64,000 nucleotides of DNA, from the NCBI GenBank assembly GCA_002269645.1, contig NIVC01000040.1, forward strand, positions 62,001-126,000, written 5' to 3'. Below are positions 48,144 to 51,100 of this stretch, piece after piece. Position 1 is the first letter of the stretch. Every line of letters begins with the position of its first letter. The notes under the pieces were generated by a model. The model saw nothing but the letters and a program-made list of their open reading frames with translations, did not search any database and was not told where the DNA came from. The position numbers and the translations under genes were made by a program. This DNA is from Macrostomum lignano. Lineage: Eukaryota.

Positions 48144-51100
48144 TCACACAATGTCAGTCTCAGGCAGGGCTGCCGCATCTTTCAGCAGCCGCTCTTCAAT
48201 ATCGGCACCAGTTTTCGGCTTCTCCTCTTTATCCAGCTGCCCAGCGTCATCGCCGGTTCGAAGTTTCAACTTGGACTCGTCCGAGTACAGGCCGGCCAAG
48301 TCGCTGCTGTTCCTCGACTCCAGCGGCTGCTCCTGCCTTCTGGCAACTCGGATTCGGTCGGCCACTCGCAGTCTAATCTCCAGGCTGCAGATGACGCAGC
48401 AAAGGATGAGCAGCGCCAGGCCCGCGGCCAGCAGCAGCCAGGAGATCAGGCTCGACAGGCGCAGCGGTTGAAGTACTCGGCCGCGGAATCTGGCCGCCGC
48501 CTCGACGCCGATGCCGCCGCTCTCGTTCAGCCAGGCGTAGGGCATCAGCAGCGGGCTGGAAAATCGGTCAGTGTCCGAGAATCCGGCCACCTGCTCCAGG
48601 GCCGCGTTGATCTGTGAGGGTTGGAGAGGTTTGGCATGGTCAATGAGAGCTGGGGCAGGGTTGGGGAGGGACAGGCTGGCCAATGAGAGCTGGGGCAGGG
48701 TTGGGGAGGGACAGGCTGGCCAATGAGAGCTGGGGCAGGGTTGGGGAGGGACAGGCTGGCCAATGAGAGCTGGGGCAGGGTTGGGGAGGGACAGGCTGGC
48801 CAATGAGAGCTGGGGCAGGGTTGGGGAGGGACGGGCTGGCCAATGAGAGTTGGGGCATGGTTGGGGAGGGACAGGCTGGACAATGAGTGCCGGGCAGGGT
48901 TGGGGAGGGACAGGCTGGCCAATGAGAGCTGGGGCAGGGTTGGGGAGGGACAGGCTGGCCAATGAGAGCTGGGGCAGGGTTGGGGAGGGACGGGCTGGCC
49001 AATGAGAGTTGGGGCAGGGTTAGGGAAGGACAGGCTGGCTAATGAGAGAAGACAGGTTGATCTCCAGGATTAGGGAGGGTCGGACTGGCCAATGAGAGCC
49101 GGGGCAGTGTCGAGGACGGACAGGCTTCCCGGAGGACTGCAACATGGGCGGCGCCACCAAGTTCGGCAGGGCCGTCGTCGACACGATCCCGGTGATGTCG
49201 GCCACCGCGGACTCCATCGTGCCGCTCATCGACACGAAGCTGGTCGTGTTGAAGGTCGACATCGAAGGAGGCGAAGGCGAGTTCTTCAAGAGCGCGCAGA
49301 AGCTGTTCGACAGCGTCACAATTCCCGTGGTGCACATGGAGTGGCTGAGGAAGCACATGAGCGAGGAGGAGCGCCAGTTCATGATCAGCTTCTTCGCTGA
49401 GAGGCGTTACAGCCCGAGGAGCATGAACGATCTCACGAAGTTGATCAACATCAGCCACACAGGGTATCAGGGAGAGGACCTTGTTTGGGTGCACAACAAC
49501 TTCGAGGATGCAGGCGGTATTGTTAATTTAAATTGAGCATGTACGCTCTTAGCTATTTCTAATCTGTTTCACTGAAAGGCGTGTGTTATTATGCCAGCTT
49601 TGTAGACCCTCTTTGTGCGTGTTTTGTAGTCATAAAATGTCTGATTTTTATAAGTGCGTTGATCGCTGCAGAATATAGTTTTGTGATTTTTACTCATTTT
49701 TTGACTTGGTCCGTATCTACTAACAGCTAATAAAGATAAGAAAATTAATCTAGCTAGCTAGATTATATTTTTTGAATATTGTCATTGATATCTTCCTGAA
49801 CTATTGGCAGTACAATCTATACACTAAAGTCCAATATCTCAATACTCGTATATGGATTTATTGTGTGGTTAAAGAGGGTCGGACTAGCCGGGGCAGTATT
49901 GGGGAGGGACAGGCTGGCCAGTGAGAGTCGGGGTAGGGTTAGAGAGGGTCGGACTGGCCAATGAGAGCCGGGGTAGGGTTAGGCAGGGACAGGCTGGCCA
50001 ATGAGAGCCGGGGTAGGGTTAGGCAGGGACAGGCTGGCCATGAGAGCCGGGGTAGGGTTAGGCAGGGACAGGCTGGCCAATGAGAGCCGGGGGCAGGGTT
50101 AGGCAGGGACAGGCTGGCCAATGAGAGTCGGGGGCAGGGTTAGGCAGGTTCGGGTTAGCTAATGAGAGCCGGGACAGGGTTAAGGAAGGTCAGGCTGGTC
50201 AATGAGAGCCGGGACAGGGTTAAGGAAGGTCAGGCTGGTCAATGAGAGCTGGGACAGGGTTAAGGAAGGTCAGGCTGGTCAATGAGAGCTGGGACAGGGT
50301 TAAGGAAGGTCAGGCTGGTCAATGAGAGCTGGGACAGGGTTAAGGAAGGTCAGGCTGGTCAATGAGAGCTGGGACAGGGTTAAGGAAGGTCAGGCTGGTC
50401 AATGAGAGCTGTTGATAGGTTCATGGAGGTTGGGGCGGCATGACCAATGAGATCTGGGTATCCCATACACACAATTTAGGTGTCATAAAAGTTTGTACCT
50501 GCATTCTCCTGGCAGCCCGCAGCAGCAGGCCCGTATTGGGCTCCACCTCTAGTCGGGTGTTGAACTCAAACGGTGGCTCCCCATTGGCCGGTGCAGCAGG
50601 CTGAAGGCTGACCGCTGCCCTGTAGGTTGGCGCGCCGTGAAAGTGCGGCGCCGAGGCTACAATTGGCGGGTTGCCGGGCAGGCAGAGGGTCAGGTTGAGC
50701 ACCCCGCTGTCCAGACAATGCGGAGTGCAAAATGCGGCATTGTCGGGATTGGCGGATGCGTTCATCATGGAGGATTTTGCCACCTGAAATCGGAGCACAG
50801 GAATCTCTCGAACCTTGTCGTCGCCAGAGTAGCTGAGGTCGGCGCTGCGGCACAGGTCTGGGGTGAAAACCTTCAGGGAGCTGCCGGCCGACACAGGCGG
50901 AGGGAACATCGAGCCGTCGCTACTGCCGGCGATTCGGTTGCCGAAGTCACCCGGCCAGACCTCCAGCTGGGATTGGCCGTTCCAGCGCTGCACCTGGCTG
51001 AGGTTGGCAAGGCTGGCCGACCCTGTGCCAACCAGAGCGGTGCCCTTGGCCGAGTTGTTCTTGCCGACCAATAGGCCAAACTTCTCCGGCACTTTCTGGC

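Follow-up and report, generated by a model that had tools for sequence, protein, structure and literature searches.

How old is a gene fragment that looks almost identical to its source, and can that identity be trusted as a measure of its age? This question is raised by a piece of an FkbM-family gene that lies within the last intron of a CD36-family gene of Macrostomum lignano. We analyzed a 64,000-nt stretch of the Mlig_3_7 assembly (GCA_002269645.1), hereafter the window, in which a window position plus 62000 gives the coordinate on contig NIVC01000040.1. The fragment is embedded in a 40-bp minisatellite, 21.5 kb from and in the same orientation as its source, the gene that we call FkbM copy 2. 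A first-pass annotation of the window had treated the fragment as a mosaic FkbM copy inserted during break repair. We consider it likely, based on comparison with a second locus of the same genome, that the fragment is an old insertion that was later homogenized with copy 2, after which both partners acquired private changes. The processes involved are known ones, ectopic insertion of a gene fragment followed by interlocus homogenization, with no new mechanism. The source and the fragment are as follows:

26119 to 27327, plus strand: FkbM copy 2, an intact single-exon open reading frame (ORF) of 402 amino acids with a Methyltransf_21 domain.
26916 to 27656, plus strand: the source segment, the 3' part of FkbM copy 2 with its 3' flank, placed by alignment; homology to the fragment of the second locus (L004, below) begins at about 26778, 138 bp further 5'.
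49125 to 49866, plus strand: the FkbM fragment, placed by BLAST and MAFFT alignment, with a PF05050 match (E=1.3e-8).

Comparison of the fragment with its source by BLAST and MAFFT confirmed that a near-identical FkbM piece does lie inside the minisatellite, as had been reported: 49125-49866 (742 bp) and 26916-27656 (741 bp) are 99.06% identical on the same strand, with one T5/T6 indel and 6 substitutions between them. Over its first 429 bp, the fragment aligns in addition with a second, inverted FkbM copy in the window (copy 1; 23140-22711), at 88%. The fragment consists of 137 codons and the stop codon from the 3' end of copy 2, followed by 329 bp of 3' flank. Thus, the downstream DNA of the earlier description is present, but its "3' coding half" is about one third of the 402-codon copy 2 ORF. 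The reading frame of the fragment is still intact, and its 130-amino-acid ORF matches the domain PF05050 (Methyltransf_21/FkbM); exact look-ups of the window FkbM proteins and of the fragment ORF yielded no match. At the ends of the fragment, we found no A-run on the 3' side, no duplicated flank (the sequences on the two sides align with each other only as ordinary repeat units do) and neither terminal inverted repeats nor a hairpin, in agreement with the earlier statement that a poly(A) tract, a target-site duplication (TSD) and transposon ends are lacking.

To place the fragment in time, we turned to a second locus, L004 (contig NIVC01002954.1), which was reached from the protein of the upstream CD36 gene (CD36-B) through protein P0009 to its contig; a duplicated locus of this kind provides a built-in test both of age and of assembly errors. 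L004 is collinear with the window from 47.2 to 63.4 kb, with substitution divergence of 1.0-3.7% in exons and 3.5-4.4% in the longer non-coding stretches, the same order as the 1.9-2.4% single-nucleotide polymorphism divergence reported between M. lignano subgenomes (PMC10733133). The comparison involves the following features of the window:

48615 to 50495, minus strand: last intron of CD36-family gene A (GT...AG, 1881 nt), with the join found in proteins P0007/P0008.
48642 to 49124, plus strand: left minisatellite block, with ~10 near-identical 40-bp units and then two irregular units.
49867 to 50445, plus strand: right minisatellite block.

The decayed 40-bp units that had been described on both sides of the fragment are indeed there, and those that adjoin it are the most irregular ones. 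The last left unit (49091-49124) is the variant ...GGGGCAGTGTCGAGGACGGACAGGC, which is present in the L004 array too, while the right block opens with 50 nt (GGTTAAAGAGGGTCGGACTAGCC and, after a gap of 10 nt, GGGGCAGTATTGGGG...) whose rare variants recur at the right junction of L004. L004 carries an FkbM fragment of its own (L004 22597-23602), with intron and orientation as in the window. The two loci do not differ at the right junction (...GGATTTATTTGTGT joined to GGTTAAA...), beyond which both have these rare repeat variants and the 10-nt gap. Since the two loci share both the fragment and an identical right junction, the insertion was one event that is older than their split. Furthermore, since it is a diverged locus that shares the right junction and the repeat variants, the fragment is not an assembly chimera. 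A single recent insertion is thus contradicted by a second locus, 2-4% diverged, that has the fragment with an identical right junction. The L004 fragment starts 138 bp further 5' in FkbM, at a left junction that reads ...GGACAGGCTGG joined to AGTGCCCGTC... and has 2 nt of microhomology (GG), whereas its right junction has none; the 183-codon reading frame of this fragment remains open.

The window and L004 fragments differ by about 4.1-4.3%, matching the non-coding flanks. However, the window fragment is five times nearer to its neighboring source than to its counterpart in L004. Over 741 aligned sites, the window fragment differs from copy 2 at 6 (0.8%), compared to 32 differences between the window fragment and the L004 fragment, and likewise 32 between copy 2 and the L004 fragment. 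These distances correspond to private branches of 3 changes for the window fragment, 3 for copy 2 and 26 for the L004 fragment. If the two fragments had been independent since the split, equal numbers of private changes would be expected, and the imbalance of 3 to 26 is significant (one-sided binomial P = 7.6e-6). The L004 fragment is not unusually fast, since its divergence equals that of the neutral flanks. Thus, given the shared insertion and the 3 versus 26 private changes, the window fragment and copy 2 were homogenized after the two loci split. Sites at which the window fragment agrees with copy 2 against L004 span 49132-49837, nearly the whole fragment, and no old block is left. The paralogues within one locus are the closest pair, and on these distances this is the pattern of non-allelic gene conversion, or concerted evolution. 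The gene conversion in the FkbM family that the first-pass annotation had proposed is therefore supported, although by the distances among the fragment, copy 2 and L004 and not by the evidence then given for it.

That evidence was the apparent mosaic structure of the fragment, which involves two further features:

22711 to 23984, minus strand: FkbM copy 1, the inverted partner of copy 2, with an FkbM domain, a start codon that reads ACG, and a frameshift.
49130 to 49143, plus strand: two copy-1-type sites of the fragment, both ancestral, with the G at 49132 between them.

The pattern of diagnostic sites was as described: the fragment has C at 49130 and C at 49143, equal to copy 1, where copy 2 has A (26921) and T (26934), and the later sites follow copy 2. 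We polarized these differences in an alignment of the fragment, copy 1, copy 2 and outgroups, and compared the L004 fragment as well. The outgroups were three FkbM loci of the same genome (L001/L002 and L003), which are 8-12% diverged; we rejected them as counterparts of copy 2 because of this divergence and their unrelated 3' flanks, and used them as outgroups only. The pair of C states is found in copy 1, in L001/L002, in L003 and in the L004 fragment, and only copy 2 differs. Since both are shared ancestral states, the two sites are uninformative about ancestry from copy 1. Moreover, we looked in the fragment for derived states of copy 1 (e.g., T at the position of 49217, A at 49314) and none is present, while the sole clearly derived state common to the fragment and just one arm, T at 49407, is shared with copy 2. 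The mosaic argument accordingly fails, with both sites ancestral in all outgroups and no derived state of copy 1 in the fragment. On the sequences aligned here, the fragment preserves copy 2 in an older state, and no recombinant template is required for this; of the "earlier or recombinant state" that had been claimed, the earlier state (of copy 2) holds up and the recombinant state, resting on ancestral sites, does not. Polarization assigned 49609, 49615, 49683 and the T indel to the window fragment, and 26921, 26934 and 27423 to copy 2. At three sites (49132, 49236 and 49315), copy 1, copy 2 and the window fragment have a state in common that is absent from the L004 fragment, L001 and L003; at 49132 (26923 in copy 2), for example, these three have G and the others have A. 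This distribution suggests that changes may have spread among the FkbM copies of the window locus.

We propose that these features arose in three steps. Before the split of the two loci, ~880 bp of copy 2 (from ~26778 to 27656, comprising the last 183 codons and the 3' flank) was copied as DNA into the 40-bp minisatellite in the last intron of the neighboring CD36 gene. As for the mechanism, DNA from nearby might have been captured, or used as a template, when a break in the unstable repeat was repaired. The junctions look like those of end joining, since neither a TSD nor a poly(A) tract is present and microhomology amounts to 2 nt at the left end and is absent at the right; an insert without a TSD, junctions with 0-2 nt of microhomology and a source whose ORF is intact in copy 2 are the features of capture by end joining. 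A DNA-level copy of the 3' end of copy 2, with end-joining-type junctions in an intronic minisatellite, is thus one part of the first-pass annotation that gains support. In a second step, after the split, the window fragment was made like copy 2 again, with copy 2 as the probable donor. Ordinary non-allelic gene conversion could have done this. Alternatively, after a break within or next to the old fragment, the 3' end of the fragment could have primed synthesis on copy 2, with microhomology-mediated end joining closing the other side. As a single event, the latter would also account for the loss of 138 bp from the 5' end of the fragment and of ~150 nt of repeat, and for the new left junction at CT. 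There is documented precedent for homologous repair that involves template switching and is completed by microhomology-mediated end joining (PMC5104497). In the third step, which is read from the polarized sites, roughly three private changes have accumulated on each partner since homogenization.

The left junction of the window fragment bears on the second step. A TCGGACT-type unit followed by a CAGTGT-type unit occurs both in the L004 array and directly to the left of the window fragment. After the CAGTGT-type unit, L004 continues with ~152 nt more of repeat and 138 nt more of FkbM, while the window goes from ...GGACAGGC directly to TTCCCGG with a 2-nt overlap (CT). Thus, since L004 retains extra repeat and extra FkbM beyond the shared units, the left junction of the window is a secondary deletion. 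We considered that the left-flank unit (GGGGCAGTGTCGAGG...) might be filler, or a residue of the FkbM sequence "CAGGTGTCG" left by template switching, all the more as 17 nt of left flank and 23 nt of right flank together rebuild a 40-nt unit, with 37 of 40 positions matching the local unit type; we rejected this since the CAGTGT and TCGGACT units adjoin each other in the L004 array. We also considered a long decayed TSD, for the flanks share the private variants GGGCAGT and TCGGACT; neighboring repeat units align equally well, however, and this candidate was rejected as a property of the array.

Several points weigh against homogenization of an old insertion as we propose it. No counterpart of copy 2 is annotated at the second locus, where the L004 contig ends ~5.5 kb beyond the locus, and the data therefore do not give the direction of homogenization. 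Homogenization extends through the fragment up to ~30 bp from its right end and has left no unconverted segment, which is long compared to a mean human tract estimated at ~250 bp; set beside this, non-allelic gene conversion outpaces point mutation in humans, where detected tracts average 880 bp (bioRxiv 10.1101/135152). The private coding changes of copy 2 are 13 bp apart and at most 18 bp from the left end of the fragment, a mild coincidence if they are simple later mutations; the private changes of the fragment at 49609 and 49615 are clustered too. Finally, both loci come from one assembly.

In the reverse event, sequence would have passed from the intronic fragment to copy 2, replacing the 3' part and flank of the gene. 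The distance data are symmetric, and a conversion tract that started a little inside the homology could have left copy 2 with its original A and T at the edge of the segment. If that edge was unconverted, though, 49132/26923, which lies between the two edge sites, would need a parallel change, and the states at 49132, 49236 and 49315 are more simply explained as changes of the gene family that were passed to the fragment; we think that this direction is unlikely. The same edge sites are the basis for a template switch between the FkbM arms, by which 49125 to somewhere in 49143-49217 (the last 18-90 nt synthesized) had copy 1 as its template and all else had copy 2. In this form, in which the earlier idea survives, the fragment would be a true mosaic after all. 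Both sites that differ from copy 2 lie at the far 5' end of the fragment, where they equal copy 1, the two FkbM copies have no difference over the 74 bp that follow the second site, which would permit a homologous switch, and template switching is documented in long-tract repair synthesis (PMC5104497). Yet two later changes in copy 2 explain these sites equally well, since both states are ancestral and are found in the L004 fragment and the outgroup paralogues. The fragment also has no derived state of copy 1 (neither T at 49217 nor A at 49314, for example), the simpler model gives balanced private changes (3 versus 3), and clustered changes occur in the fragment lineage as well (49609, 49615). 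We therefore regard a switch between the arms as decidedly improbable.

Other explanations concern the insertion itself. Reverse transcription of a 5'-truncated FkbM mRNA into the intron would fit a piece that is 5'-truncated and that contains sequence resembling a 3' untranslated region, with an AATAAA (27519-27524), and the lack of introns in FkbM means that intron loss gives no counter-argument. The product has neither a poly(A) tail nor a TSD, however, its 3' end being ...ATTTATTGTGT joined to GGTTAAAG; the copy extends 132 nt beyond the sole AATAAA, with no recognizable polyadenylation site at its end, and the older version in L004 has the same tail-less 3' end. An RNA-mediated retrocopy is thus very unlikely. 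A Helitron had been raised as a possible agent since a Helitron-like coding region lies between source and target (35.5-41.2 kb). Instead of an array, this is a single degenerate copy broken into at least six ORFs, and the CD36 exon at 48147-48614 and other arrays intervene between it and the fragment. The fragment itself adjoins minisatellite units, starts with TTCC and ends with TGTGT without a terminal hairpin, compared to the 5'-TC...hairpin-CTRR-3' structure of Helitrons; capture and movement by a Helitron is barely credible. No more probable, in our view, is an assembly artefact in which a chimeric read or a collapsed repeat placed FkbM sequence in the array. The genome is repeat-rich, and 36% of the Mlig_3_7 scaffold length is reported to be chimeric between subgenomes (PMC10733133). 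But the fragment differs from its source at 7 positions, and the 2-4% diverged contig has the insertion with the same right junction along with substitutions of its own, a longer 5' end and 126 bp of extra sequence.

An old insertion followed by homogenization has relatives among known systems. CYP21A2 and CYP21A1P are a textbook example of interlocus gene conversion. The present case resembles conversion between a gene and a nearby partial pseudogene in that two paralogues on the same chromosome are too alike for their age (bioRxiv 10.1101/135152, PMC4467073). It differs from usual interlocus conversion in that the partner is a 0.74-kb fragment within a minisatellite in the intron of another gene, and in that the whole shared length has been homogenized, with no mosaic of converted and unconverted segments. 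As in templated insertions at breaks, the source is intact, there is neither a TSD nor a poly(A) tract, and microhomology is 0-2 nt, the target here being an unstable tandem repeat; unlike those in yeast assays, which are typically 5-34 bp, the original insert was ~880 bp, and it is ancient and fixed and not somatic. The old homologous right junction, together with a new left junction that has 2 nt of microhomology and loss of sequence, resembles homologous repair closed by end joining. It differs in that it is inferred from one evolutionary product, and ordinary conversion with an unrelated deletion fits equally well. Helitron and Pack-MULE capture and retrocopies made by long interspersed nuclear elements likewise place partial gene copies in introns, but the defining ends, TSDs and poly(A) are absent here.

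This fragment is a clear and datable case of an old, stranded gene fragment that appears young, for its 99% identity would imply a recent insertion, yet the subgenomes of M. lignano diverged only after it was in place. In a neopolyploid, repeat-rich genome such as this one, where ectopic homogenization reaches over ~20 kb, dating duplicates by their identity is unsafe.

We confirmed that the fragment is antisense to FkbM within the CD36 pre-mRNA, as had been pointed out, since the CD36 gene is on the minus strand and the fragment is FkbM-sense on the plus strand. In mouse oocytes, antisense transcripts derived from pseudogenes feed endogenous small interfering RNA pathways. The fragment is similar to such pseudogene antisense transcripts in its geometry only, lying within a host transcript and antisense to the parent gene; unlike in those systems, it diverges between the two loci at the neutral rate of the surrounding non-coding DNA, and we therefore see no sign of function. 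That it might be an antisense trigger kept at both loci, whose sequence conversion holds close to that of the nearby FkbM gene, with double-stranded RNA or small RNAs from the CD36 pre-mRNA tuning copy 2, is a long shot on the evidence of sequence; if true, it would couple the expression of the neighboring CD36 and FkbM genes.

The host intron is defined by its exons and by protein models. The exons that border it are:

48147 to 48614, minus strand: last coding exon of CD36 gene A.
50496 to 51149, minus strand: penultimate coding exon of CD36 gene A.

The splice sites of the last intron, on the minus strand, are GT at 50495-50494 and AG at 48616-48615, and in the M. lignano proteins P0007 and P0008, ...RRMQ is followed immediately by INAAL... 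across it; P0007 has no contig on record. The intron is made almost wholly of the minisatellite and the FkbM fragment. Gene A is one of two tandem CD36-family genes that occupy 48147-63366 on the minus strand and have 35-39% amino-acid identity, and the CD36 homologues that we found are all from M. lignano. The UniRef entry P0008 ("Protein croquemort", A0A1I8G8T8) is a chimeric model in which 3' exons of the upstream gene are fused to the downstream gene. Most of gene A is bracketed by an inverted pair of repeats, (GACA)n and its complement (GTCT)n, at 46576-46815 and 52493-53366, with 91-94% identity.

The 40-bp unit of the intron was found nowhere else in the window, in which tandem repeats make up about a third of the sequence, above the 15% reported for simple and tandem repeats in the M. 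lignano genome overall (PMC5730564). In the left array (48642-49040), the window has ~10 near-identical units, compared to 1-2 of that type in L004 (23600-23895), and from this difference the array expanded recently at its locus. The unit at 49041-49090 is 50 nt long and not 40, and in it a ~21-nt patch (AAGACAGGTTGATCTCCAGGA) stands in place of ~10 nt. In partly inverted orientation, this patch matches the neighboring and unrelated 40-bp array at 47186-48083 and is absent from L004; its alignment score of 27 was reached in 0 of 1000 shuffles (best 24). It has the appearance of a short stretch templated by DNA some 1-2 kb away. The L004 fragment also carries an extra 126 bp in its 3' flank (L004 22616-22782) that is bracketed by a ~12-nt direct repeat (ATAYWCTAAAA), with no further copy among the sequences compared. 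This piece may be a small insertion with a TSD, or an ancestral piece that was erased in the window by conversion from copy 2.

Among the FkbM genes, for which all of the homologues found are from M. lignano, copy 2 is the sole intact one in the window, and both it and its paralogue P0002 are single-exon genes. One of its derived changes (26921) alters a conserved NFP motif from Pro to Gln; the others are at 26934 and 27423. Copy 2 thus has Gln at 26920-26922 in the motif NFP-DCN-GGATKF, where Pro is found in six homologous proteins, copy 1, the window fragment and the L004 fragment. This substitution may affect function, or the haplotype may carry it as a private variant. Copy 1 is probably a pseudogene: its start codon is ACG (about 23938-23936), and an extra A in a run at ~23682-23676 shifts the frame into a stop. 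Its similarity to copy 2 is a patchwork, with blocks of 100% identity, one block of 85% and a 3' end (the last ~130 bp) at only 64-68%.

Between the FkbM genes and the CD36 genes, the Helitron-like region (35582-41139, minus strand) encodes a Helitron_like_N domain (E=3e-46), PIF1 and Pif1_2B domains and a weak OTU match in at least six ORFs, and it is flanked by related arrays of 18-bp (CCCCAGATAGCAAGCATC) and 23-bp (CTTTAATGTTTGACATGGTGGCT) units, at 33064-34457 and 42423-46550. Finally, an interstitial telomere-like (CTAACC)n run at 31458-31536 lies within a dispersed repeat (31338-33025) that recurs, with 88% identity, at 17713-19377 of outgroup locus L003.

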